Virus record (IMG/VR): IMGVR_UViG_3300042261_001312
Coordinates: 186,001-250,000 of that record
Length of the DNA stretch: 64,000 bases
Strand: one strand, 5' to 3'
Each line of letters starts with the position of its first letter. The first letter of the stretch is position 1. Made by a program: the position numbers and the translations under genes. Shown one piece after another: positions 2,859 through 24,552 of the stretch. Below the pieces are notes generated by a model. It saw only the letters and a program-made list of their open reading frames with translations, was not told where the DNA came from and did no database searches.

Positions 2859-5800
2859 ATGGATAAATTACAAGTATTGGGAGAAATCAAAGGATTTCTT
2901 GAAGGCTATAATAATGATTTAAAATATTTGGTGAATGTCGAGACTGACCCAAGTAACTGTATCGCAGAATGTGTGATACATGAGCCAAATAAACAGTCCA
3001 GAATCGAAAAGATTTATTATGAACCGTTCATGTACATGAAGGATTTGTCTAAATTGGGCATTAAATTATATGCTGGTGAAACAGATGAATTCATTGTAAA
3101 GAAAAGGATTAAACACGGCATTAAAATTACCAAATTAAAAACTGGAAATCAAAAAAGGTTGGTCAATGGTTATTGTTATAAATTGACAAGCAATAGATCA
3201 TATAATGAAATTGTTACATATTTGAGGGATGGTGGTATAAATCCATATGAAAAGGCTGTCGATGGCGATGGCAATTTTATCAGAGATGCCAAAGGCGATA
3301 TCATTTATCCAAACCGTGATTTATTTTATGCTCCGAGAACTACGGAGCAATTTTTTATATCCACGCAGACAAGACTTTTCAAAGGTTTTGAAGAATATAA
3401 AAATGTTCATAAACTCACATTTGACATTGAAACCACTGGTTTGAGACATCAAATATCAAGGGTATTTGCAATTGGTGTCAGAGATAATCGTGGATATGAA
3501 ACAATTCTTGAAGCAGAAAAATTGGATGACGATGTTGCTGAAGCAACTCTTATTCAAGACTTTTTTAATTTAATTGATATTTTAAAACCTGCCGTAATTT
3601 CGGGGTATAACTCTGAAATGTTCGACTTTGAATTCCTTTTGGGTAGAGCAAAAATACTTAAAATGGATTTGAAGAAACTTCCACAAGGACTTAAATCAGG
3701 TATTGATTTAAGGCGAAGGGCAAATACTTCCGTTAAATATGGCAATACTGCTGATAAGTATACCGCTACTGAAATGTGGGGTTATTCTATCATTGATATT
3801 ATGCATGCGGTAAAGAAAACAATTGCGGTGAATAGTGACTTGAAAGAAAGTAAATTAAAATACATCGCAAAGTACGAAAAAATTGCCAAGCCAAATAGAA
3901 CATATATTAAGGGTGAAGATAATTCCATCGGTAGATTCTATGCCCAAAATAAAATGTTTTTGGCTAATGAAAATAATGACTATATTGAAATTCCTACAGA
4001 ATATCAAGATACTGCAAAGAAATTATATGTTCTTCAAGGAAATAAAGGAAGAATTTCTGACGAAGAATATAAAGTAATGAGAAAGAAATATCTTGATGCC
4101 GATAGTGGTTTCGTTTCATGGCTCAAAAGTGCGGCATTGCCCAAAGGAACTGTTTTATTTACCAGTGGCAGAAAACTTGTAAAACAATACCTTTTGGATG
4201 ACTTATGGGAAACTGAACAGGTTGATGAATTATACAATCAATCTTCATTCATGTTGGCAAAAATTGTTCCAACCACATATCATCGTGTTTGTACTATGGG
4301 TACTGCATCGATTTGGAACTTATTGATGACCGCATGGAGTTATGAAAACGATCTAGCAATTCCAATTCCTGATAAAATCGAAAGATTTTCAGGGGGTTTG
4401 GCAAGATGTTATAAAGTAGGATTCTCAAAGAGAATTAAAAAGATTGACTATGCATCACTTTATCCAATGATTCAATTAACGGATAATGTATTTCCAATGT
4501 TTGATGTTACGAATGTGTTGAAGAAGATGTTATTGTATTTGACAACTACTCGTAACATCTATAAAAAAATGGCAAATGGGGATAACTTGAATAATGAAGA
4601 GGTTACTTTGTTGAAGCAAATTGACCACGAAATGCACGTTAAATATATTAACAATAAATTGAGTCCTGCTGATTTGTTAATGTGTAAGGTAAAACAATTG
4701 CCTATCAAAATTTTGAACAACTCTTTGTTCGGTGCTTTGGGTTCGGCAATATCATTCAACTGGTCTGATAACGTATGTGCGGCAAGGATTACCTGTACTG
4801 GTAGGTTACATTTGCGTCATGCTATCAGTTACTTCACCAAATATGGTTGTACCGCATTACTTGCAGTAACTGACGGTATTAACTTTAGTTATCCAGAAAC
4901 AACAACAATTAAAGTAACTGATACAGAAGTTATTGAAGGTGTTCAAGAAGGCAAGATTGAAGATTTATGGCAATATGGTGGCAAAGTTGGATTGAATGCA
5001 TTGATTGAGAAATACAATAAAGAAGAAATGAAGCCACCGTTTATGTCTGTTGATGATGATGGTGATTCGTTGTCTTGTTTGAATCTTTCACGTATTAATT
5101 ATGCTTCACTTTCTTTGGCTAAAGATAAGAAGACTGGTGAAATGAAAGAAAGGGTCAAATTGACTGGTAATACAATCAAGTCTAAAATAATGCCTGAATA
5201 CATTGAAGAATTTATTGATAAGGGTTTGAATATGGTATTGCATGGTCAAGGTAGTGAATTTGTTAAGTATTATTACGATTATTGTGATGATATTCGTTAT
5301 ATGCAAATTCCGTTGAAAAAGATTGCAAGCAAAAGTAAGATAAAAACCACATTGACTGCATATAAGAAAAGAGGTACTGACAAAAATGGTAGGGAAAAGG
5401 GTGTTCAGGCACATATGGAACTCTTAATTGAAAAGAGGAATAAAATTGCCGAAGAACTTTTTGAAAAACATAGGGAATCATTGGATTTGAGTAAAGTTAA
5501 AAAGGAATTGACCATTGACGATAAATTAAAATATATTGCAAATTATATGCCACCAGAACCTGAGTTGGATAGTGTTGTATATTATGTAAATTCGGGATAT
5601 AAGAAATCGCATGGTGACTCTAGAATTATTGTTGATAAAGTTACTGGCAAGGAAAGATATTGTGCTACTCTTATTAGCAATGAAGACTTGCTTGAGAATC
5701 CAAATATGAAAGGCGAGTATAATTATGAAAAATATCTTGATGCGTTTAATAAACGTGTTGAATCATTGTTGGTTGGATTTGACCCTGAAATACAAAAGAA

Positions 5801-6509
5801 AATTTTGGTTAAAATTGGTAAAGAGGGTGATTTGAAAAAAGAAGACTTTACAAGCGATGAGTTGGTATTGAAAAATTTCGATGATGACGATTACGATGAT
5901 TCAATGTTTTTGGAAGAACTTGAAGTTGATTTTTGGAATAAAACTGGTTATGATCCACGAAAAGTGTGGAATGGATTTAAAATGTACGATGATAGCAAAG
6001 TATATTATGAAATATACGACAATGCATTAAATCATTTGAATAAATTAATGACCGAAAGTAATAAGCCAAGAATCAGATCAATCAATGATGATTACAAAGA
6101 TGGTGATTTAGTGCTAATTAAAGATGGAAGTGAATATCATGTGGCTGCATATAATGGCGAATACATGCAAATTGTCAGAGAAAATGTTCAAGTTCCAAAA
6201 AGTGAGATAGAATTGGAACTTGATAGGATTAGGGAAGAAAAGGAAAGGAAAATTGAAGAACTACGTGCAATTGATTTAACTTCAAAAACTGATACCGAAA
6301 TTCAATTGGAATCGGAAATGGCTAAACGTGAAAAATATTTTCCACTCTTTTTGAAACAATATGGTCTTTCTCCTGAACAATATACAATAGATAAATTTTT
6401 CATTGAGGTAGCGGAAGCAATTGAACCATTTAATTATTTCATTTCACAAATGGAAAACGAAAATGAACCAGAACCTGAATATGATGATGGTGGTGATGGT
6501 GCTTATTAA
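2859..6509 (+). CDS. polB: family B DNA polymerase (T4 gp43-like) with 3'-5' exonuclease
   Basis: ExoI TFDIETTG, ExoII GYNSEMFDF, ExoIII YLLDD; region II IDYASLYPMI, region III KILNNSLFG, region I variant AVTDGINF; long acidic C-terminal extension. Confidence 0.93.
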   Translation: MDKLQVLGEIKGFLEGYNNDLKYLVNVETDPSNCIAECVIHEPNKQSRIEKIYYEPFMYMKDLSKLGIKLYAGETDEFIVKKRIKHGIKITKLKTGNQKRLVNGYCYKLTSNRSYNEIVTYLRDGGINPYEKAVDGDGNFIRDAKGDIIYPNRDLFYAPRTTEQFFISTQTRLFKGFEEYKNVHKLTFDIETTGLRHQISRVFAIGVRDNRGYETILEAEKLDDDVAEATLIQDFFNLIDILKPAVISGYNSEMFDFEFLLGRAKILKMDLKKLPQGLKSGIDLRRRANTSVKYGNTADKYTATEMWGYSIIDIMHAVKKTIAVNSDLKESKLKYIAKYEKIAKPNRTYIKGEDNSIGRFYAQNKMFLANENNDYIEIPTEYQDTAKKLYVLQGNKGRISDEEYKVMRKKYLDADSGFVSWLKSAALPKGTVLFTSGRKLVKQYLLDDLWETEQVDELYNQSSFMLAKIVPTTYHRVCTMGTASIWNLLMTAWSYENDLAIPIPDKIERFSGGLARCYKVGFSKRIKKIDYASLYPMIQLTDNVFPMFDVTNVLKKMLLYLTTTRNIYKKMANGDNLNNEEVTLLKQIDHEMHVKYINNKLSPADLLMCKVKQLPIKILNNSLFGALGSAISFNWSDNVCAARITCTGRLHLRHAISYFTKYGCTALLAVTDGINFSYPETTTIKVTDTEVIEGVQEGKIEDLWQYGGKVGLNALIEKYNKEEMKPPFMSVDDDGDSLSCLNLSRINYASLSLAKDKKTGEMKERVKLTGNTIKSKIMPEYIEEFIDKGLNMVLHGQGSEFVKYYYDYCDDIRYMQIPLKKIASKSKIKTTLTAYKKRGTDKNGREKGVQAHMELLIEKRNKIAEELFEKHRESLDLSKVKKELTIDDKLKYIANYMPPEPELDSVVYYVNSGYKKSHGDSRIIVDKVTGKERYCATLISNEDLLENPNMKGEYNYEKYLDAFNKRVESLLVGFDPEIQKKILVKIGKEGDLKKEDFTSDELVLKNFDDDDYDDSMFLEELEVDFWNKTGYDPRKVWNGFKMYDDSKVYYEIYDNALNHLNKLMTESNKPRIRSINDDYKDGDLVLIKDGSEYHVAAYNGEYMQIVRENVQVPKSEIELELDRIREEKERKIEELRAIDLTSKTDTEIQLESEMAKREKYFPLFLKQYGLSPEQYTIDKFFIEVAEAIEPFNYFISQMENENEPEPEYDDGGDGAY

Positions 6510-7997: not shown

Positions 7998-8921
7998 ATG
8001 AAAACAAGTAATAGAGAAGAATTTATTTATAAAGCCGTTCAATTACATAGTAATAGTTATGATTATTCTGAAGTTATTTATTTAAATAATAAGACTAGTG
8101 TAAGAATAAAATGTAATAAATGTGGTAAAATTTTTAATCAAACTCCTAATAATCATTTACGCAATCACGGATGTCCATATTGTTTTTCATTAAATATAGG
8201 TAATTTGAAAAGACATTCAAATAATATTTTTATTGAAAGAGCGAATGCCATACATGGTTATAAATATAATTATGATGATATATGTTATGTAAATGCTAAT
8301 ACAAAAATTAATATTATTTGTGAAAAACATGGAACGTTTAAGCAAACTCCTTCAATGCACTTAAAAGGTAGAGGTTGTCATATTTGTGGATTAGAGAAGA
8401 GATGTGATAGTAAGAAAAAAACATTAAACAGTTTTATTGAAGATGCTAAGATTATGCATGATGAAAAATATGATTATTCTTTGGTGCAATATGAAAAGTC
8501 AAACAAAAAAATATTAATTATTTGTAAATTACATGGTGTTTTTACACAAACCCCTAATAATCATTTGAATGGTGCTGGATGTCCCAAGTGTTGTGAATCA
8601 AAAGGTGAAATGAAAATTAGAAATTATTTTGAAAAAAATAATATAAGATATTTGAGACAAATGACATTTAATAATTGTAAAAATAAAAAGTCGTTATTTT
8701 TTGATTTTTATTTGCCTGATTATGATGTGTTGATAGAATATGATGGAGAATTACATTATAAAAGTGTTGAATATTTTGGTGGTGATGTGGGATTGCAATA
8801 TAGAAAATATAATGATAACATAAAAAATATGTATGTTATAGAAAATAATTTAAACTTAGTGAGAATTAGTTATATTGATTATGAAAATATTGATAACATA
8901 TTAAATCAATTATTACAATAA
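7998..8921 (+). CDS. free-standing putative homing endonuclease: DUF723-like Cys/His repeats plus C-terminal Vsr/DUF559-like PD-(D/E)XK domain
   Basis: Three repeats of the form FI..A...H...YdY...Y......i.C..hG.F.QTP..HL.g.GC..C, then ESKGE...FDFYLP...IEYDGELH...LVRISY. Confidence 0.8.
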   Translation: MKTSNREEFIYKAVQLHSNSYDYSEVIYLNNKTSVRIKCNKCGKIFNQTPNNHLRNHGCPYCFSLNIGNLKRHSNNIFIERANAIHGYKYNYDDICYVNANTKINIICEKHGTFKQTPSMHLKGRGCHICGLEKRCDSKKKTLNSFIEDAKIMHDEKYDYSLVQYEKSNKKILIICKLHGVFTQTPNNHLNGAGCPKCCESKGEMKIRNYFEKNNIRYLRQMTFNNCKNKKSLFFDFYLPDYDVLIEYDGELHYKSVEYFGGDVGLQYRKYNDNIKNMYVIENNLNLVRISYIDYENIDNILNQLLQ

Positions 8922-10836: not shown

Positions 10837-13800
10837 ATGACATACAACGAATTCTTACAGAATTTCTTACCTGAATTTTCTAAAATCAAATCATATAAAG
10901 GCAGAATTGAATATGCTAATCAGTATCTAACCAAACTAGGTAGTGGTAGTGGTAGAGTTGTTTATGATATTGACGGAACAAAAGTTTTTAAAGTCGCAAA
11001 AAATACTAAAGGAGTTGCACAAAATGAGGTTGAATCAAGTATTGGTAGAGATTATTATACTCAAGATTTGGTCACTGAAGTATTTGAATCTGCAGATGAT
11101 GATAGTTGGATTATTGCAGAAAAAGCAAAAAAAGTTTCGGAAAAAAGAATCATTCAACTAACTGGTATTCCAAATTTAAGTGAATTATATTATTATCTCA
11201 GAAATAACGAACTTCGTAATAAAGGAAGTAGAGGTATACATCATCAAGATGATGATATTGTTGAGCAGTTAAATGAAAATGAATTTGCAGCAAATATTCT
11301 CGATTTTATTATAAATTATAATCAAAGTGCTGGTGATTTGGGTAGATATAGTAGTTATGGTGAAGTAGTGCGTAATGGGCAATCTCAAATAGTAATAACT
11401 GATTATGGATTAAATGATGAAGTATATCAGACACACTACACACGAAAAGATAAGCAACCATATCGCATGTATGAATTATTCAATCATGCTGACGGAAATG
11501 ATGATGATCTCTCATACGTTGATGATGGTGATATTATAAGACATGGCATGTGGGCATTAATTCCTTATGGTGTTGGGGATGGTACTGATACAATTAATGA
11601 AGATTTTATTAACTTTGTTTCGAATAGAGATAATTATCCATCAAGACCATTGACGGTAATGCCATATTTAATGGAAGTTTTCCATGAATGTGTAAATAAT
11701 CTCGAAGAAGTATTAAATAAGGTTGAGGATAAGAAGAAGTTTTATATTAATTTATTAAAACTTCAAGAATATTTGATTGAACAGAAATTTTATGATAGAG
11801 AACCATTAAAATTATATGAAGGTGAAATGATGGACGAAAAATACGATGTTAATACTGCTGAAGCAATAGCAAAAAAAATTGCTGAAAAGTACGGATTTAA
11901 GAAATTAGAATATATTGGTGGTGGTAATTTTGGAGTTGCTTATGATGTTGGTGAAAATAAAGTATTGAAAATAACCAGCGATAGAACAGAAGCAAATGAA
12001 AATCTTAAATTAAAAGGCAAACCATTGCAATATATTGCAGAGCCATATGAAGTGATAAGAATTTCTCCAAAGACAACTCAAATACCTGAAACATATGCAA
12101 TTATATTGGAGAAATTACAAACAGATGTGAATGAATTTAGAAGGCTTATCGATAGAATGGAATTTGCCTTCAAGAGAATTATGGGTGTTGACTACTATGA
12201 TGTAATTTTACATTACACCGACCAAGAAGATTTTAGTGTGGATGAGGATAAGGTGAATGCATATATGAAAAGAAATCCACAAGATGCTGAATTCTTTTAT
12301 GGAATTATAAGGATTGCAGAAGAGTTGAAGAAATATGGTATTGAAAGCGTTGATTATATCAATCCCAGCAATCTTGGATATAAACAAAATGGTGCATTGG
12401 CGTTTTTTGATGTTGGGTTTGGTAGCGAATCACCTTCAAGTGAGAAACCAAGAAATTTTGAAATTGATGAAGATGGAAGTGCTAAATTTTCACAAGTTGA
12501 TTCAATTGGTCGTGATGATTTTCCAACATATGACCAAAATGATACGTCACCATTAACTGATAATAATATTCCAACAACTACTGATGAAGATTTGGAATAT
12601 CGACATGCAGATGATGCGACACAAGACGAATACATAATTGATGAAGATATGGAATTTGTCGGTGGTAGCGAAATGACCGATGACACACATGAATTGGATG
12701 AACGTATTCTATCAGCAATGAAAGGTAGTAGTACGGTTGATGTTAAGAAGAAATGTAGATTAGGCGGTTTGGGAAGTACAAGTGTTGCTTGTAATCAAGG
12801 TGACATTAAAAATTTGAAGATCAGATCATTAAAGGAAGATACAATAAGGCATAATGAAGATGTTTGGGCATGGGTATCTCCTGATAATAGATTAATTCGT
12901 GTTCCTAAACTAAATCATAAAGGATATATAATGAATGTCTATAGGAATTTTAGTTGGGATTACGATCAAGTGTTTGATAAAGCAATTGAAGATGGATGGG
13001 TCAGAGTTATTTACGAATATTTTCCAAAACAATATAAGTCTTCGTTGTCATTAAATGGCTATGATAAAGAACGTGTTATTTCTGTTTTTAAAGAAATGTT
13101 TTATAATTTGGTTAAATATGGAAATAATAATGTATATTTGGAGTATGAAAATCCAAAGGGGTATGATTCATTTAACATGGGTACTGCTGATGGAAAAGAA
13201 AAGATGAGTTCGATAATTGGCGAAGAATATCTAAATGAAGACGTTGTTCCAAATAGACGAAAATTTTGGGCATGGGTATCTCCTAACAATGAATTTATTG
13301 AAATACCTAAAATGGGGCATGTCGAATATATTGAAGATAAATATCCAAATTCTGATGATGTATATGCAGATGCAATTAGAGATGGTTGGGTTAGTGCGAT
13401 GTATTCTCATTATAATGATGGAGAAGGTAGTGAATTGTCATTGAATGGAATTGATAAAAATAGAGTGAAAGATGTTCTTAAAAATGTTTTTGGAAATTTG
13501 GTAAAAGGTGGAAATCTTTCAATATATATGGACTATGAAGATGGTACAATGAGTGATATTATTCATACACAAAATATGGATGGAAAAATGAAATTATTTG
13601 ACTTTCTTCGTGAAAATCTTGATGAAACAATTGAAGCATCAGATGCGTATAGTGACGGAGATGCGTTGCAGTCAATGATTGATGGCAAGAAAGATGTTGG
13701 ATTTATTCATTTTAAAGGTCACAGGAATGCAGAGGTGGGTAATAATTTAAAAAAACTTGCAATTGAAAATGGTTTTAAATTTATTCCTGTGGAGCAAGCA

Positions 13801-14130
13801 CATCATAATATTGACATGAATGTTGTTTATCGAGATACTCCAAGAGGTGAAAGAAATGCTAAGAGATTATACGATATTGCAATGAGTCATAATGGATATC
13901 TTGCTGATAAATCACCAGAAGAAGCGTGGGAAATTGGTAAGTTGTTAGATTATAGCGAACAATCGATAAAAGAATATATTAAAAGGAGATATGTTGATAA
14001 AACAGATGCTTATGGTAGAAAATATCCCGAAGATATGTTTCCTTCAGATATGGTTGTTGACCCAAAATATTATATGAATGAAGCAGAAATAATTATAAAT
14101 AATATTAAAGTGGCTAGATTATTAATGTAA
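10837..14130 (+). CDS. multidomain polyprotein: two protein-kinase-like domains, a tandem pair of ~130-aa WAWVSP domains, and an uncharacterised C-terminal domain
   Basis: Kinase 1: LGSGSGRVVY, FKVAK, QNEVE, GDL, TDYG. Kinase 2: IGGGNFGVAY, VLKIT, EANE, DYINPSNLG, FFDVG. WAWVSP repeats begin at 12865 and 13267. Confidence 0.75.
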   Translation: MTYNEFLQNFLPEFSKIKSYKGRIEYANQYLTKLGSGSGRVVYDIDGTKVFKVAKNTKGVAQNEVESSIGRDYYTQDLVTEVFESADDDSWIIAEKAKKVSEKRIIQLTGIPNLSELYYYLRNNELRNKGSRGIHHQDDDIVEQLNENEFAANILDFIINYNQSAGDLGRYSSYGEVVRNGQSQIVITDYGLNDEVYQTHYTRKDKQPYRMYELFNHADGNDDDLSYVDDGDIIRHGMWALIPYGVGDGTDTINEDFINFVSNRDNYPSRPLTVMPYLMEVFHECVNNLEEVLNKVEDKKKFYINLLKLQEYLIEQKFYDREPLKLYEGEMMDEKYDVNTAEAIAKKIAEKYGFKKLEYIGGGNFGVAYDVGENKVLKITSDRTEANENLKLKGKPLQYIAEPYEVIRISPKTTQIPETYAIILEKLQTDVNEFRRLIDRMEFAFKRIMGVDYYDVILHYTDQEDFSVDEDKVNAYMKRNPQDAEFFYGIIRIAEELKKYGIESVDYINPSNLGYKQNGALAFFDVGFGSESPSSEKPRNFEIDEDGSAKFSQVDSIGRDDFPTYDQNDTSPLTDNNIPTTTDEDLEYRHADDATQDEYIIDEDMEFVGGSEMTDDTHELDERILSAMKGSSTVDVKKKCRLGGLGSTSVACNQGDIKNLKIRSLKEDTIRHNEDVWAWVSPDNRLIRVPKLNHKGYIMNVYRNFSWDYDQVFDKAIEDGWVRVIYEYFPKQYKSSLSLNGYDKERVISVFKEMFYNLVKYGNNNVYLEYENPKGYDSFNMGTADGKEKMSSIIGEEYLNEDVVPNRRKFWAWVSPNNEFIEIPKMGHVEYIEDKYPNSDDVYADAIRDGWVSAMYSHYNDGEGSELSLNGIDKNRVKDVLKNVFGNLVKGGNLSIYMDYEDGTMSDIIHTQNMDGKMKLFDFLRENLDETIEASDAYSDGDALQSMIDGKKDVGFIHFKGHRNAEVGNNLKKLAIENGFKFIPVEQAHHNIDMNVVYRDTPRGERNAKRLYDIAMSHNGYLADKSPEEAWEIGKLLDYSEQSIKEYIKRRYVDKTDAYGRKYPEDMFPSDMVVDPKYYMNEAEIIINNIKVARLLM

Positions 14131-14180: not shown

Positions 14181-15005
14181 ATGGGAAGACCAAGAATTTA
14201 TAGTTTAAATGAAAATTATTTTAATATTATTGATAGTAATGAAAAAGCATATATATTGGGATTTATTTATGCTGATGGTAGTGTATTTAGAAATTATTTG
14301 ACAATTGGATTATCAGATAAAGATGTTGAAATATTGGAACATATTAAAAAGTGTTTGGGATATGATGGAATTATTTATAAAAGATTTGATGCGAAAAAAA
14401 ATAAATCATATGTTATATTATCAGTAAGTTCGAAAAATATTGTAAAAACATTAATTGATTTGGGTGTTATTAATAATAAAACATATCTTTCAAAGGAATT
14501 CCCAACATACGAAAAAAAATACGAATGGGCGTTTTTGAGAGGATTTTTCGATGGAGACGGGTCAATATATTGCAATTTTCGTAATAATAATATTAAAACA
14601 ATTGAGTATACTGTATGTTTTTCTGGTAATTTATCTGTATTAAATCAGTTGAAAAAAATTTTATATGAATATAATATATCAAGTTCAAACATAAGACATA
14701 GACGTGAAAATGAAGAATCATGTATGTTGGAAATAAGGGGTAATAATAATATTGAAAAAATTTATGGTCTAATGTATGAAGATGATGGATTCTATTTAAA
14801 GAGAAAAAAAAATAAATTTAATGACTTTAATAATATGTTGACGACATTAACCAAAAGAAATTTATCTAATAAAATTATTGACGACATTCTTGAATATTAT
14901 AACATGAAAATAAAACAGTCTGAAATCGCAAACATTTTAAAAATACCCAAAAGTTCTGTGAGAACAGTAATTCAAAGATTAAGAAAAAATGGAAAAATTG
15001 TATGA
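14181..15005 (+). CDS. free-standing double-motif LAGLIDADG homing endonuclease with C-terminal HTH
   Basis: AYILGFIYADGSV and AFLRGFFDGDGSI motifs; C-terminal QSEIANILKIPKSSVRTVI HTH. Confidence 0.88.
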   Translation: MGRPRIYSLNENYFNIIDSNEKAYILGFIYADGSVFRNYLTIGLSDKDVEILEHIKKCLGYDGIIYKRFDAKKNKSYVILSVSSKNIVKTLIDLGVINNKTYLSKEFPTYEKKYEWAFLRGFFDGDGSIYCNFRNNNIKTIEYTVCFSGNLSVLNQLKKILYEYNISSSNIRHRRENEESCMLEIRGNNNIEKIYGLMYEDDGFYLKRKKNKFNDFNNMLTTLTKRNLSNKIIDDILEYYNMKIKQSEIANILKIPKSSVRTVIQRLRKNGKIV

Positions 15006-16578
15006 ATTTATTGAAAATTTAAGAAATAAACCTTTTATTAAAAATTTAATAGAAAGTGAATATAGTGTTTATGCCGTTGGCGGTGTTGTTAGGGATTTAA
15101 TATTAAATAAGCCGAATAAAGATATTGATTTGGTGGTTGGTAACATTGATATTGATGATTTGATTTTTGTTTTAAAAAAATTTGGAAAAGTTGATGTTGT
15201 TGGAAAATCGTTTGGGGTAATTAAATTCGTAGATTCTGATGGTACTGATTATGATATTGCACTTCCACGAAGAGATAAAAAAAATGACAATGGCGGTCAT
15301 CGTGGCTTTGATGTTCAATACGATAAAAATATCCCGATTGAGTCAGAATTAATTCGCAGGGACGCAAAGTTCAACGCAATGGCGATTAATATTAATACTG
15401 GTAAATTTATTGACCCTTTAGGCGGTTTAAATGACATCGAAAATAAAAGTATTTCTGCAGCAAATCCTGAAGCATTTAGTGATGACCCATTAAGAATGTT
15501 GCGCATGATTAGTTTCGCAAGTCGTTTTGGTTTCAATATTGAGCCAAAAACAATGCAAAAAATCATTCAAAATGCTGACAGAATAAAAGAAATTACACCT
15601 GAAAGAATCTTAACAGAATTCGATAAAATTGTTAAAAAAGGCAATATATTCTTGGGTGCAAAACTATTGGGTGCTACTGGTTTATATGAAGCAATATTTG
15701 GAGTACAGCCACAAATTGATATGTACAAATCCAAAAATCTATTCAATAATGCCAAGACAATGGGTGATTTTATTTATCTATTGACCAAAGATTCTCTTGA
15801 TAGTCCTGCTGAATTTTATAAAGATAAATTAAAAGGTGATAACGATACATATAAGGAATTGAAGGCATTGGAAACTGCATACAGCATGGATAGTACTAAT
15901 CCAATTGCAAGTAGATCAGTTGCCCATAATATGTATTTATATTCGCCGCAATCACTTAATAGTCAAATTGTTCCCGATAATGTAAAGAATGCAGCACAAG
16001 AATTACTAACAGGTAAATATCCTAAAACAACAACTGAATTGGCTGTTAATGGTACTGATTTGATGAATCTTGGATTAAAGGGTAAAGAGATTGGCGATAT
16101 GCAGAAATCATTATTGATTAAAGTTTATTCGGATAAAGTTAGAAATAATAAAGAAGAATTATTATCTTTGGCAGGTGGTAATAATACATTAACTGAAGAT
16201 ATGAATGTTCTTTACAGTGCAGTTGTTCTTGACGAACAATCACACGATAAATTGGTAAAAGTTTTTAGGATGATGATTCCTGAAGGCTGGGAAATAATTG
16301 CGCATCATATGACAATTAATATGGGTGCGATAAAACCTGAGTTTCAAGATGATTTGGGTGATAAAATAAATTTATCAGTAATTGATTATGCTATTGATGA
16401 TAAAGTTATGGCAGTTGGTGTTGAAGGATATCCAACAATGAATGCCAAACCACATATAACAATTGCTGTTAATAGAAGTGCTGGTGGTAAACCAGTAATG
16501 TCGAATAATTTAACTGATTGGAAAGAAATTAAATTTAAATTGGAATTAACTGGAATTGTAACTGAAATTAAAAGATAA
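14989..16578 (+). CDS. cca: class II CCA-adding tRNA nucleotidyltransferase (no HD domain) fused to a C-terminal 2H cyclic phosphodiesterase (Trl1-CPD-like)
   Basis: VYAVGGVVRDLIL...KDIDLVV, RRDAKFNAMA, FSDDPLRMLR, ITPERI, tail ELAVNGTDLMNLGLKGKEIG; then, after the LTED linker, two HxT motifs (HHMTI at 16303, PHITIA at 16453). Confidence 0.85.
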   Translation: MEKLYEFIENLRNKPFIKNLIESEYSVYAVGGVVRDLILNKPNKDIDLVVGNIDIDDLIFVLKKFGKVDVVGKSFGVIKFVDSDGTDYDIALPRRDKKNDNGGHRGFDVQYDKNIPIESELIRRDAKFNAMAININTGKFIDPLGGLNDIENKSISAANPEAFSDDPLRMLRMISFASRFGFNIEPKTMQKIIQNADRIKEITPERILTEFDKIVKKGNIFLGAKLLGATGLYEAIFGVQPQIDMYKSKNLFNNAKTMGDFIYLLTKDSLDSPAEFYKDKLKGDNDTYKELKALETAYSMDSTNPIASRSVAHNMYLYSPQSLNSQIVPDNVKNAAQELLTGKYPKTTTELAVNGTDLMNLGLKGKEIGDMQKSLLIKVYSDKVRNNKEELLSLAGGNNTLTEDMNVLYSAVVLDEQSHDKLVKVFRMMIPEGWEIIAHHMTINMGAIKPEFQDDLGDKINLSVIDYAIDDKVMAVGVEGYPTMNAKPHITIAVNRSAGGKPVMSNNLTDWKEIKFKLELTGIVTEIKR

Positions 16579-16583
16579 TTGAA

Positions 16584-17138
16584 GTGAGCGAATTTAAAGA
16601 AGCAAAAATTGCTGGTGATATTGGTGAAGAAGAAATATTGAAATTAATACAAAATCCTGATCACTATCTATATGATCCAGATGCTTATATTGATAATACA
16701 GGTAAAGCAAATAGTGATTGGGATATCGTAAGACCTCGTACAGGTAAAAATGTTGAAGTTAAAAATGATTTTAAATCAAAATTTACTGGAAATATACTTT
16801 TAGAGATTTTTATGAATGGTAAATTGTCTGCATTATCTGTAACGAAAGCCGAATATTGGGTGTTTATTACGGGGTATAGATATATCTGGATTAAACCTAT
16901 TGAAATATATCGTTTTCTTGAACAACATTTCGAATATGGTAGAACACCAATAACTGGTGATGGGGATACTAAAGAAAAATTAGCATATCTTGTTAGGCAT
17001 GACGTTTTGGTTATGCACATTTATAATAATTTAACCAAAGAACAGGGTTGGGTTGATATGATTGGTGAAAATGAGGTTATGTATTATGATAATTTTACTA
17101 AAACATTAAAAGATAAAGGAATAGAAACATATGATTAA
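16584..17138 (+). CDS. PD-(D/E)XK restriction-endonuclease-like protein
   Basis: GDIGEEE helix, WDIV...VEVKND, TGNILLEI pattern; GTG start. Confidence 0.65.
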   Translation: MSEFKEAKIAGDIGEEEILKLIQNPDHYLYDPDAYIDNTGKANSDWDIVRPRTGKNVEVKNDFKSKFTGNILLEIFMNGKLSALSVTKAEYWVFITGYRYIWIKPIEIYRFLEQHFEYGRTPITGDGDTKEKLAYLVRHDVLVMHIYNNLTKEQGWVDMIGENEVMYYDNFTKTLKDKGIETYD

Positions 17139-17697
17139 AAGATTAATAGCATTCGATTTTGATGGTACACTTTCCAATTCACCTGAACCACAGGAAGGTA
17201 TGCAAATTTGGAAAGAAAAAACTGGACAGGATTATCCACATAAAGGTTGGTGGGGTAGACCAGAAAGTCTTGACACAAACATATTTGATATACAATTGTT
17301 TGATGGTGTATTGAATTTATTGAAAATGGAAGACAAAGACCCTGAAGCGTATGTTATAATATTAACATCACGAAGGGAGAAATTACGTCCACAACTGGAA
17401 AAAATATTAGCAGATAATAAAGTGCATGTTGATAAAGTTGACATGAAAACTCTTGAAATATCAAAAGGTCAAAAAATTCTTGACTATATTAAAGAATTTC
17501 CTGATCTAAGAGAGATTGATGTATTTGACGATAGAGAATCGGATATTGAATCATATAAACAAATTCAGTCACAAATTCCTGAGAAAATAAATTTCAGAAT
17601 ATTTTGTGCGAATAATGGTCAACTACATTTAGTTGAAGGAAATAATAAACTAACCAACATAATAAACGAAGAACTCCTAAATCTATTCGTAACATGA
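17131..17697 (+). CDS. HAD-superfamily phosphatase, 'Swiss Army Knife' RNA-repair-like type
   Basis: Motif I FDFDGTL, GWWGRPESL cap signature, motif II ILTSRR, motif III SKG, motif IV VFDDRE. Confidence 0.75.
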   Translation: MIKRLIAFDFDGTLSNSPEPQEGMQIWKEKTGQDYPHKGWWGRPESLDTNIFDIQLFDGVLNLLKMEDKDPEAYVIILTSRREKLRPQLEKILADNKVHVDKVDMKTLEISKGQKILDYIKEFPDLREIDVFDDRESDIESYKQIQSQIPEKINFRIFCANNGQLHLVEGNNKLTNIINEELLNLFVT

Positions 17698-18092: not shown

Positions 18093-18908
18093 ATGATTGA
18101 TATGAGATATAAACCATATTTTCTTCCGCAAGTCAGTGCACCATATACGATTGTGTTACAAAGACTTGATGATGAAGATGTGGATTACGATGTGATTGAG
18201 ACAAATCCCGAAGAGTTGAATCCGTCTCAGGGGATTACGCTGTCAGATGAAGTAGGAAATGTGGAACTTGATGATTTAAACCCTATTTGGGTTGATAATG
18301 AAATGAATGTTCTTGATGGTCATCATAGATGGGTTAAAGCAATGGTTGATAATGTTCCGTTGAAAGCAGTTAAAATCAATTTAAATAATAAAGATGCTTG
18401 TAGAATTTTAAATAAGATTCAAGACATTTATGAATATGAACATCAACAGGGGTTAGAAGAAGTTGAAATGCAAAGTGCTATTAATTATTATGGTGATGAT
18501 GAAAATCAATTTCTAACAGAATTGGAAGGGTATAATACCGAAATTCAGAAAGAATTTCCCCATGCTAATGAACAAACAATCACAGCGTATAGAAAAAATC
18601 CAATTAAAGAAAATTCTGCAGTTGGTAATTTTTTCACATTAAGTCCAATTGAGGGATATAGTAAATATCAGATTGATTTTGATAATCTCTTAGATACTAA
18701 TGCATTGGGTGTCACTTATAAAGATGGTCAAGAACCAGTTGATATTATTGCAAGAATATGGTTTCCACATATAAATTTTGAAAAATTGGGTGAACAATAT
18801 AACATGCCAGCCATTAACCTAAAAAATAAGGCAGTTGCAGAAAAAGCAATGAAACTTGGGTATGATGGAATAAAATACGGCGATAAATTAATTCAAGGAC
18901 TAAAATAA
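18093..18908 (+). CDS. ParB/sulfiredoxin-like N-terminal domain plus C-terminal domain ending GYDGIKY
   Basis: LNPSQ...IWVDNEMNVLDGHHRW is a ParB-like motif; the C-terminal assignment is uncertain. Confidence 0.6.
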   Translation: MIDMRYKPYFLPQVSAPYTIVLQRLDDEDVDYDVIETNPEELNPSQGITLSDEVGNVELDDLNPIWVDNEMNVLDGHHRWVKAMVDNVPLKAVKINLNNKDACRILNKIQDIYEYEHQQGLEEVEMQSAINYYGDDENQFLTELEGYNTEIQKEFPHANEQTITAYRKNPIKENSAVGNFFTLSPIEGYSKYQIDFDNLLDTNALGVTYKDGQEPVDIIARIWFPHINFEKLGEQYNMPAINLKNKAVAEKAMKLGYDGIKYGDKLIQGLK

Positions 18909-23240: not shown

Positions 23241-23639
23241 ATGGTATCATATAATATTAATTTTCCACTTAGGGATGATGTTTCGACAAATACCTATTTT
23301 TTAATGACAAAAGTAACCAAAACTGCATTCAGTTCTGATTTACTTTTATTATTGCTAACACAAAGGGGCGAAAGATATTATGAACCAGATTATGGTACGA
23401 ATCTATTGAAATTTATTTTCGAGCCAAATGACTCCCTCACTGCGAATGATATTGAACAGGAAATAAAAAGAACTGTTTCTATGTACATTCCAGCACTCAC
23501 CATCAATAGTATCAATTTTAATTGGAATTATGATGATAATGGTCAACAAATTCCTGATACTCAATTAAACGTTAACATTAAATTTACATATGCAGAAGAT
23601 GCATTTAGTGAACAAGGAAGTCTTGATTTACAATTTTAA
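23241..23639 (+). CDS. baseplate wedge/sheath-initiator protein, T4 gp25-like (GPW/gp25 fold)
   Basis: LLLTQRGERYYEPDYGTNLLKFIFEPN is the typical gp25 signature. Confidence 0.88.
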   Translation: MVSYNINFPLRDDVSTNTYFLMTKVTKTAFSSDLLLLLLTQRGERYYEPDYGTNLLKFIFEPNDSLTANDIEQEIKRTVSMYIPALTINSINFNWNYDDNGQQIPDTQLNVNIKFTYAEDAFSEQGSLDLQF

Positions 23640-23649
23640 TACAAATACA

Positions 23650-24552
23650 ATGCGAAAAAAAATAACAACAGAAGAATTTATAAAAAAAGCACAATTGGTA
23701 CACGGTGATAAATATAAATATCATCATGTTGAATATACTGGATGTAAGAATAAAATAAATATTATTTGTGATAAGCATGGAGTTTTTAAACAAACGCCAG
23801 ATAAACATTTGTCGGGTCATGGCTGTGATAAATGTGTTGGATATGGTAAAACAACCAAAGATTTTATTATATCATCGAAATTAATTCATGGTGATAAGTA
23901 TGATTATTCTAATGTAAAATATTGTGGCATGAAAACCAATGTTAATATAATTTGTAATATACATGGAGTATTTACACAAACACCTGATGACCATTTACAT
24001 GGTCGTGGCTGTTATAAATGCGGATATGACAAAAATAGTAAATATTTTTCAAGCACAACAAACGAATTTATTGAAAAATCTAAATTAATTCATGGTGATA
24101 AATATGATTACTCTAAGACAAACTACGTTAATGCAAAAAATAAAATAACTATTGTTTGTAGAATACATGGTGAATTTACTCAAACACCAACAAATCATTT
24201 AAGTGGTAAAGGCTGTAAATTATGTTCAGAATCCAAGGGTGAATTAATAATTAAAAAATATTTGGATGTGAATAATGTTAAATACATTAGAGAAAAAACA
24301 TTTGACGAATGTAAAAATAAATTTAAATTATTTTTTGATTTTTACTTACCAGAAAAAAACATACTTGTTGAATATGATGGTGAACAACATTATAAATCAA
24401 TTGATTTTTTTGGAGGTAGAAGTGCATTTGAAAAATTAAAAACGAATGATAATATTAAAAATAATTTTGCACGTGCAAATGGCATTCAACTATTGCGAAT
24501 TAAATTTAATGAAATTAATAATATTGATAAAATTTTAAAAAATATCATATAA
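23650..24552 (+). CDS. free-standing putative homing endonuclease (DUF723-like repeats plus Vsr/DUF559-like domain)
   Basis: Three HGdKYdYS...C..HG.F.QTP..HL.G.GC repeats plus ESKGE...FDFYLP...VEYDGEQH. Start set to ATG 23650 (MRKKITTEEF) rather than 23590. Confidence 0.8.
   Translation: MRKKITTEEFIKKAQLVHGDKYKYHHVEYTGCKNKINIICDKHGVFKQTPDKHLSGHGCDKCVGYGKTTKDFIISSKLIHGDKYDYSNVKYCGMKTNVNIICNIHGVFTQTPDDHLHGRGCYKCGYDKNSKYFSSTTNEFIEKSKLIHGDKYDYSKTNYVNAKNKITIVCRIHGEFTQTPTNHLSGKGCKLCSESKGELIIKKYLDVNNVKYIREKTFDECKNKFKLFFDFYLPEKNILVEYDGEQHYKSIDFFGGRSAFEKLKTNDNIKNNFARANGIQLLRIKFNEINNIDKILKNII

Follow-up and report, generated by a model that had tools for sequence, protein, structure and literature searches.

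Results and Discussion

A CCA-adding enzyme, a 2H domain, and a HAD phosphatase in one gene run

We analyzed a 64,000-nt stretch of DNA, positions 186,001 to 250,000 of IMG/VR virus record IMGVR_UViG_3300042261_001312, which we call the window. It carries a gene for a 529-amino acid (aa) protein that joins the body of a class II CCA-adding enzyme to a compact 2H phosphoesterase domain (CCA::2H) and, two genes downstream, a gene for a HAD phosphatase. An earlier note on this DNA had proposed that these parts heal the 3' ends of clipped tRNAs and restore their CCA without the help of an RNA ligase. The loci and proteins named below carry our own labels (L and P numbers).

The whole record is a 327,676-bp phage genome, complete according to CheckV, with a guanine-plus-cytosine content of ~30%. 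When sequencing runs were searched, the phage turned up in DNA metagenomes of lake and freshwater origin, which stem from at least two studies, and in no RNA run. All 39 tRNA genes of the genome lie outside the window; five encode the CCA end, and ~34 do not. The module lies ~135 kb from the main tRNA array, inside a long plus-strand gene run that extends from a DNA polymerase gene (2859-6509) to baseplate genes (23241 onward) and has homing endonuclease genes scattered through it.

The genes of the module and its surroundings are listed in Table 1. From CCA::2H through ORF184 (an open reading frame, ORF, of 184 codons) and the HAD gene to a receiver domain (Rec) gene, the junctions are, in turn, a 5-nt gap and overlaps of 8 nt and 4 nt, and the end of the preceding LAGLIDADG gene overlaps the CCA::2H start codon. 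The order CCA::2H then HAD was kept in four relatives (L004, L006, L008, and L016), with 59-74% identity in the CCA enzyme.

Table 1. Features of the module and its neighbors (nt positions in the window; aa positions in the 529-aa protein)
Feature	Position	Strand	Basis
CCA::2H fusion gene, 529 aa	14989..16578	+	ORF list, Pfam, NCBIfam
Class II CCA-adding enzyme body, aa 27-394, predicted Bacillus type	15067..16170	+	Pfam, NF009814, 1MIV
CCA motif A	GGVVRD aa 31-36, DID aa 45-47 (carboxylates D45/D47)
CCA motif B	RRDAKFNA aa 123-130
CCA motif C	DPLGG aa 142-146
CCA motif D, DDxxR nucleotide-selecting residues	DDPLRMLR aa 165-172
CCA motif E	ERILTEFDK aa 205-213
Compact 2H phosphoesterase domain, aa 401-529, CNPase/Trl1-CPD clade by model	16189..16575	+	HxT motifs, fold
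HAD_SAK_1 phosphatase, 188 aa	17131..17697	+	PF10307, invariant residues
ORF184, PD-(D/E)xK nuclease, 184 aa, GTG start	16584..17138	+	Invariant residues, structural matches
Large upstream ORF, 1097 aa, two protein-kinase-like domains	10837..14130	+	Motifs and feature search
LAGLIDADG homing endonuclease gene	14181..15005	+	PF14528 E 6e-16, PF00961, phrog_4645 E 5e-48
Stand-alone receiver (Rec) domain, 122 aa	17694..18062	+	PF00072 E 5e-18

The CCA-adding enzyme body

Pfam placed three domains in the first part of the 529-aa protein: PolyA_pol (PF01743) at aa 27-155 (E = 8e-20), PolyA_pol_RNAbd at aa 181-243 (E = 1e-14), and tRNA_NucTran2_2 at aa 346-394. These are the head, RNA-binding, and tail domains, and neither Pfam nor NCBIfam matched an HD domain anywhere in the protein, in agreement with the HD-less class II nucleotidyltransferase described in the earlier note. 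The best NCBIfam match was NF009814, the Bacillus-type CCA enzyme, which aligned over profile positions 9-389 of 396 and missed its equivalog cut-off (151 vs 290 bits); judged by these scores, the body appears to be a divergent member that the model does not name. A match to NF008137 was limited to the head and neck (aa 26-218). The CCA models of NCBIfam outscored the PcnB and A-adding models.

The best solved relative is the CCA enzyme of B. stearothermophilus (1MIV), to which the motif residues align. Among 22 relatives, motif A (GGVVRD and D45/D47) was invariant, as were R123, R124, D125, N129, D142, G146, D166, R169, R172, E205, R206, E210, and K213. The body is therefore classed here as a predicted full-length class II tRNA nucleotidyltransferase of the Bacillus, HD-less type, with predicted CCA specificity. 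Since this type has no HD domain to begin with, the earlier statement that the phage "replaced HD" serves as an analogy and not as a description of how the protein evolved.

A minimal 2H domain of the predicted CNPase/Trl1 branch

The 2H domain follows the tail domain, with two HxT motifs where the earlier note had put them. The first lies in HHMT, which starts at nt 16303; its HxT proper (H440-M-T442) covers nt 16306-16314. The second, HIT, occupies nt 16453-16461 (H489-I-T491). H440, T442, H489, and T491 were invariant in 54 homologous domains (alignment A1). PF08302 (tRNA_lig_CPD; CPD, cyclic phosphodiesterase) matched aa 434-510 below its threshold (21.7 bits vs a cut-off of 23), and three relatives exceeded the cut-off: P0015 (32.5), P0043 (27.0), and P0182 (27.4). 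With the 2H alignment as a profile, PDB sequences yielded chance matches only.

We built an AlphaFold (AF2) model on alignment A1, with a mean predicted local distance difference test score (pLDDT) of 96.4. In the model, the HxT motifs would lie on strands E40-45 and E89-94, that is, on the two central strands. Its strongest match in the PDB comparison was the catalytic domain of mouse CNPase (Z = 13.6, root-mean-square deviation 2.1 A, 125 of 129 residues), with goldfish RICH at Z = 10.7 and other families well below: a Burkholderia phage phosphodiesterase (7.4), LigT (6.4), and rotavirus VP3 (5.5). Among Swiss-Prot models, the CPD domains of the Arabidopsis, S. pombe, and yeast tRNA ligases came out on top, followed by CNPases and E. 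coli ThpR, so that the comparison with Trl1 CPD and CNPase which the earlier note had suggested found both. Acb1 ranked 15th (template-modeling score, TM, 0.48; E = 0.22), and its family, PF23474, had no Pfam match in the 529-aa protein; an Acb1-like role was rejected as the leading explanation on these grounds. The relationship to CNPase and Trl1 is visible only by fold in the predicted model, according to which the domain is a minimal (~125 aa) member of the CNPase/Trl1-CPD branch and not of the Acb1 type. The reaction predicted from clade membership is opening of an RNA 2',3'-cyclic phosphate to a 2'-phosphate.

When we searched 1.84 billion representative proteins with aa 401-529, 1229 clusters matched at E<=1e-3 and 585 at E<=1e-10, many more than chance would give. 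The domain occurs in four settings: alone, after a P-loop polynucleotide kinase (proteins of ~310 aa, called "predicted kinase" in some sources), fused to a CCA enzyme, and C-terminally in proteins of 1400-2300 aa. In GenBank phages, a protein-level search returned only 33-34% matches, to a "hypothetical protein" of Agrobacterium phage Atu_ph07 and to one uncultured phage, and a DNA-level search returned a sole match of 142 bp at 74% to an uncultured 642-kb phage. The search for loci in species genomes and IMG/VR used alignment A4, which is narrower than A1. Among 185,579 species genomes, one contig matched in a search restricted to a few peptide patterns. The family is thus uncharacterized, abundant in uncultured phages, to which it is essentially confined, and essentially absent from cultured phages and cellular genomes. 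The sole cellular match is a 170,662-bp contig (L022, PLXT01000115.1) binned as a Methanobacterium metagenome-assembled genome from palsa; since all other matches are in phages, this contig may be phage DNA placed in the wrong bin.

The HAD phosphatase

The 188-aa protein encoded two genes downstream in the coupled run bears the signature GWW..P.SL by which the earlier note had recognized it (GWWGRPESL, residues 39-47), and it passes the cut-off of HAD_SAK_1 (PF10307) with 31.4 vs 25.6 bits. The HAD motifs are DFDGT at 9-13 (I), T79 (II), K112 (III), and D133/D134 (IV). Invariant positions in 36 homologues (alignment A2) comprised D9, D11, T79, K112, and D134 together with G39, W40, W41, E45, S46, and L47 of the signature. 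Similarity to Pnkp-type HADs was weak (phrog_415, E = 2.5e-7; HAD_PNKP in relative P0145). The protein is predicted to remove 2'- or 3'-phosphates from RNA ends. Some relatives have HAD proteins of ~300 aa, with a C-terminal extension that had no Pfam match.

Fusions and neighborhoods link the three domains

The three domains are joined in several orders in other phages. Single polypeptides with the arrangement 2H::CCA::HAD were found in P0182 (698 aa) and P0257 (711 aa), P0142 reads 2H::X::CCA::HAD, and P0139 reads ..GNAT..CCA::2H::HAD; in addition, there are two-part fusions in both directions, 2H::HAD in P0145 and HAD::2H in P0224. All of these fused homologues retain the catalytic motifs.

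A survey of co-occurrence, which had also been suggested earlier, was made on the best 80 IMG/VR loci with a 2H domain, and gene content was scored 5 kb either side of it. CCA and HAD were both near the 2H domain in 56/80 loci. In 29 of the 56, 2H was in the CCA frame, and in 27 it was a separate ORF of ~130-145 aa; all three domains were fused in 3. Nine further loci, several of them truncated, had one of the two partners, CCA or HAD. A kinase or an Rnl1 was present in none of these 65 loci. The 2H domain was fused to or adjoined a polynucleotide kinase in 12 loci, 11 of which had an Rnl1-family ligase within 5 kb and none a HAD. In other large phages, 2H domains ~50% identical to the window's are fused to a polynucleotide kinase, with Rnl1 at a distance of 2 kb.

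A 2H domain tree shows ~12 changes between the fused and the stand-alone state, and at least four of these changes are forced by well-supported branches, while the CCA/HAD neighborhood persists. Because the triad is kept through repeated fusion and fission, we take it as good evidence of a functional link. The kinase context is essentially one clade, with one or two changes.

Many relatives are much larger. At least 20 representative ones have a single ORF of 1000-2300 aa (1453 aa in L016) that encodes a protein of the 1097-aa type (upstream of the module in the window) together with CCA and 2H, and those of 1400-2300 aa have kinase-like, ART-PolyVal, or GNAT domains in addition to CCA and 2H; in the window, the ORF is in pieces. 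As for the extent of the module drawn in the earlier note, CCA::2H and HAD stand as its parts, with two changes: ORF184 between them is an inserted nuclease (see below), and many relatives continue upstream into the giant protein. Domains are also inserted before 2H or before CCA in several relatives (P0001:400-650, P0005, P0015, P0027, P0011, P0018, and P0139). These are a ~250-aa segment, which had no Pfam match where it stands between CCA and 2H, a second LigT/Acb1-like 2H, an ART-PolyVal ADP-ribosyltransferase, or a GNAT acetyltransferase, and the window's CCA::2H is a minimal version of such proteins.

A putative unit for cleaning and rebuilding tRNA 3' ends

From the domain identities, the fold, the invariant catalytic residues, the fusions, the neighborhoods, and the genome inventory computed here, we infer the activities, their product and order, a tRNA substrate, a role in counter-defense, and a host nuclease that clips tRNA 3' ends. 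We think it reasonably likely that the CCA enzyme, its tethered CNPase/Trl1-type phosphodiesterase, and the HAD form a ligase-independent unit that cleans and rebuilds tRNA 3' ends. In this scheme, a metal-independent RNase would cut a tRNA in or just after the CCA tail and leave a 2',3'-cyclic phosphate. The 2H domain, held near the end by the tRNA-binding CCA enzyme, would open the cyclic phosphate, with a 2'-phosphate and a free 3'-OH as the expected product. The HAD_SAK phosphatase would then remove the remaining phosphomonoester to give a 2',3'-diol, and the class II nucleotidyltransferase would rebuild CCA, making the tRNA chargeable again. The same CCA enzyme would also have an everyday job, on the ~34 phage tRNAs without encoded CCA.

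The two contexts of the 2H domain fit this chemistry. CNPase and Trl1-CPD convert a 2',3'-cyclic phosphate to a 2'-phosphate and a free 3'-OH. Since ligation of the Trl1 type makes use of this 2'-phosphate, kinase::CPD with Rnl1 can do without a phosphatase. For CCA to be added and the tRNA to be charged later, the end has to be a clean diol; a CPD that supplies a CCA enzyme should thus have a phosphatase next to it.

Several points weigh against this reading. The contrast between HAD with CCA and no HAD with the ligase rests on few independent events, and the census loci come mostly from related phages. Many relatives carry the unit as the C-terminal portion of a polyvalent-type giant protein, and the domains of such proteins need not share a substrate. 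The 2H domain has only ~125 aa, compared with ~210 for CNPase, and its substrate range could differ. The damage under repair is hypothetical, as no anti-phage nuclease of bacteria is known to us that would cut at the CCA end to leave a cyclic phosphate, and a cut deeper than the discriminator base is beyond what a CCA enzyme can mend. Moreover, the genome has an Rnl1-family ligase in its tRNA region and a 178-aa Pnk-like kinase without a phosphatase domain, ~150 kb and ~100 kb from the module, respectively; RtcB, Rnl2, Tpt1, and LigT-type 2H proteins were not found in it. Given this ligase and kinase, the window's 2H and HAD could also, or even mainly, serve ligation in trans. The earlier claim that the module works without a ligase thus holds in part: it is supported by the fusions and by the CCA and HAD loci, which lack a kinase or ligase in the 5 kb either side, and qualified by the Rnl1 and Pnk genes elsewhere.

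The most direct alternative is that 2H and HAD provide general 3'-end healing for the phage Rnl1, at breaks in the anticodon loop as with T4 Pnkp/Rnl1 and Trl1; fusion to the CCA enzyme would only dock 2H on tRNA, and CCA rebuilding would be a separate matter. The ligase and the kinase are there to be served, the window's 2H and HAD are the sole copies of their families and the only 3'-healing candidates in the genome, 2H domains ~50% identical to this one are fused to a kinase near Rnl1 in other large phages, and the parts of PMC7824862 used here assign 2H and SAK-HAD to end healing for ligases. The distances within the genome argue the other way, as do the census, with no kinase or Rnl1 near the CCA/HAD loci and no HAD at any kinase::2H locus, and the multidomain fusions, which join 2H and HAD to CCA and never to a ligase. 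We regard this explanation as unlikely on its own; it is not exclusive of the end-rebuilding unit. The same is partly true of a second one, routine maturation of the 34 phage tRNAs without CCA, in which 2H and HAD would clear ends left by an unconventional 3'-trailer nuclease and no host attack would be involved. It would suit a genome with 39 tRNA genes and encoded CCA in only five, and CCA enzymes are common in tRNA-rich jumbo phages, as far as the passages of PMC7824862 drawn on here go. We nevertheless hold it to be quite unlikely: the genome offered no candidate for a metal-independent processing nuclease, and the module is far from the main tRNA array. It is established, too, that the usual bacterial 3' processing enzymes leave a 3'-OH, which needs no healing.

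A set of independent counter-defense domains is, in our judgment, very unlikely. Here, 2H would degrade immune signals, either free 2',3'-cyclic or cyclic-oligonucleotide ones, in the way Acb1 does, HAD would dephosphorylate nucleotides, and CCA would be a mere neighbor. Many relatives do have 1400-2300 aa with kinase-like, ART-PolyVal, or GNAT domains, some have a second LigT/Acb1-like 2H (PF13563/PF23474) beside this one, and CNPase-type enzymes hydrolyze free 2',3'-cNMPs in vitro (PMC5283653). Set against this are the missing Acb1 match in Pfam and the poor structural match (TM 0.48, rank 15), the fact that the Acb1/LigT-like 2H, where present, is additional to this domain and not a substitute for it, and the fusion to polynucleotide kinase and the persistent CCA/HAD link, which point to RNA ends.

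We put forward a wider form of the end-rebuilding unit as a doubtful but possible extension. Polyvalent proteins, a concept said to go back to Iyer and colleagues in 2017, are reportedly giant phage proteins that string together unrelated counter-defense domains and are delivered with the DNA. The triad could be the catalytic end of such a protein (protein-kinase-like, repeats, CCA, 2H, HAD), delivered or made early against undescribed abortive-infection RNases that clip CCA and leave a cyclic phosphate. Two healing routes would then have been built on one 2H module: CPD, phosphatase, and CCA for the acceptor end, with no ligation, and kinase::CPD with Rnl1 as a split, Trl1-like route for internal breaks.

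Comparison with known systems

The E. coli-type Cca is a class II CCA enzyme joined to activities that open cyclic phosphates and remove 2'-phosphates (Yakunin 2004, as cited in the portion of PMC5283653 used here). The overall logic, end cleaning followed by CCA addition, would be the same in the window. There, however, healing is the work of one metal-dependent HD domain, whereas here it would fall to 2H and a separate HAD, on a CCA body of the predicted Bacillus type; the phosphatase is usually a separate gene and is fused in some relatives.

The 2H domain is placed by its model in the same structural clade as those of Trl1 and vertebrate CNPase, and its sister phage proteins, a P-loop kinase::2H beside an Rnl1-family ligase, amount to a split Trl1. 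Unlike in Trl1 and CNPase, the window's 2H sits on a CCA enzyme and not on a kinase or ligase, it is shorter (~125 vs 210-250 aa), and its phosphatase partner would remove the 2'-phosphate that Trl1 ligation needs. With T4 Pnkp/Rnl1, the module would share the setting, phage repair of tRNAs that host nucleases have cut; common to both are a DxDxT acylphosphatase for the 3' end and an Rnl1 and a Pnk-like kinase in the genome. The T4 Pnkp HAD handles cyclic, 2'-, and 3'-phosphates alone and is fused to its kinase; the kinase here has no phosphatase domain, and the HAD is of the SAK family (PF10307), alone or fused to 2H/CCA, and accompanied by a dedicated cyclic phosphodiesterase. Finally, the phage anti-CBASS protein Acb1 is likewise a small 2H-superfamily enzyme with two HxT/S motifs, from which the window's domain differs by its 2H clade, the absent PF23474 match, and a weak structural match.

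Full-text searches of the literature returned no description of a CCA::2H fusion, of the three-way fusions, or of the two contexts; an earlier description in Burroughs and Aravind 2016, reportedly the survey that defined the SAK HADs, is possible. As far as the parts of the article used here extend, Iyer et al. 2021 (PMC7824862) list 2H, stand-alone "Swiss-army-knife" HAD, and CCA enzymes among the RNA repair genes of jumbo phages; they tie 2H and HAD to healing for an ATP-grasp ligase, treat the CCA enzyme separately, and do not describe the triad of CCA, 2H, and HAD, its fusions, or the contrast with kinase::2H and Rnl1.

If the proposed unit is real, it would represent a second, ligase-free branch of phage RNA repair, acting at the tRNA acceptor end and not the anticodon loop, and would match the HD domain of E. 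coli Cca with non-homologous parts. From it, one would predict nucleases that clip the 3' ends of tRNAs in freshwater bacteria under infection, and the module could be used as bait to find them. The 125-aa domain would be a minimal CNPase/Trl1-type cyclic phosphodiesterase and possibly a useful reagent for healing RNA ends. The kinase::2H and Rnl1 sets, for their part, hint that phages carry the eukaryotic Trl1 pathway in a split form.

Probable selfish nucleases and the large upstream protein

ORF184 has an E..D..ExK arrangement (E15, D47, E58, and K60) that was invariant in 27 homologues. Its model (pLDDT 90) had no match by Foldseek, and a wide structural search matched the restriction endonuclease NhoI (Z = 8.1), the homing endonuclease I-Ssp6803I (7.7), and Hjc resolvases. 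L004, the closest relative, lacks ORF184 at the CCA/HAD junction. Homologues of ORF184 occur there in other relatives and also in unrelated contexts; another relative has a LAGLIDADG gene on the opposite strand at the CCA/HAD junction. ORF184 is most likely a free-standing selfish or homing PD-(D/E)xK endonuclease inserted between CCA::2H and HAD, and it was rejected as a component of the module on the structural search, the invariant D-ExK residues, and the sporadic distribution.

The region around the module is rich in genes for selfish endonucleases (7998-8921, 14181-15005, 16584-17138, and 23590-24552). The set consists of two HNH homing endonucleases, one of which sits between gp25-like and gp6-like baseplate genes, and the LAGLIDADG and PD-(D/E)xK enzymes either side of CCA::2H. 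The LAGLIDADG gene is at the same upstream junction in L004 (74% identity) and not in L006 or L016. Because the upstream protein and CCA::2H are separate genes with no endonuclease between them in one relative, we do not claim that the LAGLIDADG gene caused the split.

The 1097-aa upstream protein had no Pfam match, including in its C-terminal half. Its protein-kinase-like domains span aa ~1-215 and ~340-620, followed by C-terminal segments that are repeated; phrog_4301, of unknown function, matches aa 29-208, and a feature search with aa 1-215 retrieved Phage_T7_kinase, Kinase-PolyVal, Pkinase, and OspG clusters. The kinase-like motifs read GSGSGRVVY..KVAK..ITDYGL and GGGNFGVAYDV..KVLKI..FFDVGFG, and the protein has two WAWVSP(D/N)N repeats. 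A homologue of the first kinase-like domain is a separate ORF directly upstream of kinase::2H genes (L012/L013 5279-5950; L084, L087, L094, and L095), so the kinase-like domain accompanies the 2H module in both of its contexts.

Other genes near the module and in the genome

The Rec protein, a receiver of the classical kind, has the phospho-acceptor residues D9, D53, T81, and K103 all present and matches PF00072 with 65.6 bits. Its gene is translationally coupled to the HAD gene and was kept after it in L004, L016, L023, L025, and L027; no histidine kinase was noticed near it. We considered whether it could be cREC, the cyclic-phosphate enzyme "cRec" of PMC7824862, and rejected this, as it had no PF20274 match and no similarity to the PF20274 protein from L014. 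In L014 (1287-2140, minus strand), from the phage with P0182, a gene for a small AAA_33 kinase is followed by a cREC_REC (PF20274) gene ~4 kb away, a putative second pair for RNA-end processing.

A ParB-like 271-aa protein (window 18093-18908) follows the module in all relatives examined, with 62-77% identity, and weakly matches both the ParB-like phrog_620 and PDC-S06, a PADLOC candidate; PADLOC otherwise gave nothing meaningful. The only other HAD-like gene in the genome, for a 102-aa HAD phosphatase, belongs to an apparent sugar-nucleotide operon (G000 C1:142750-144300; L020:735-2279) with a PfkB-like sugar kinase and a cytidylyl/adenylyltransferase; judged by reading the sequences, the operon could well be an ADP-heptose one. 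An N-terminal peptide, KQRLFE(V/I)M..NPDF, is common to the 178-aa kinase-only Pnk and the 157-aa ORF that follows it (together G000 C1:96570-97580, L003:1423-2432), which suggests a shared targeting or interaction tag. The main tRNA array includes a tRNA with anticodon CTA (an amber suppressor, called "Pyl" by ARAGORN; G000 C1:33976-34047); the ORFs of the window read normally under code 11.

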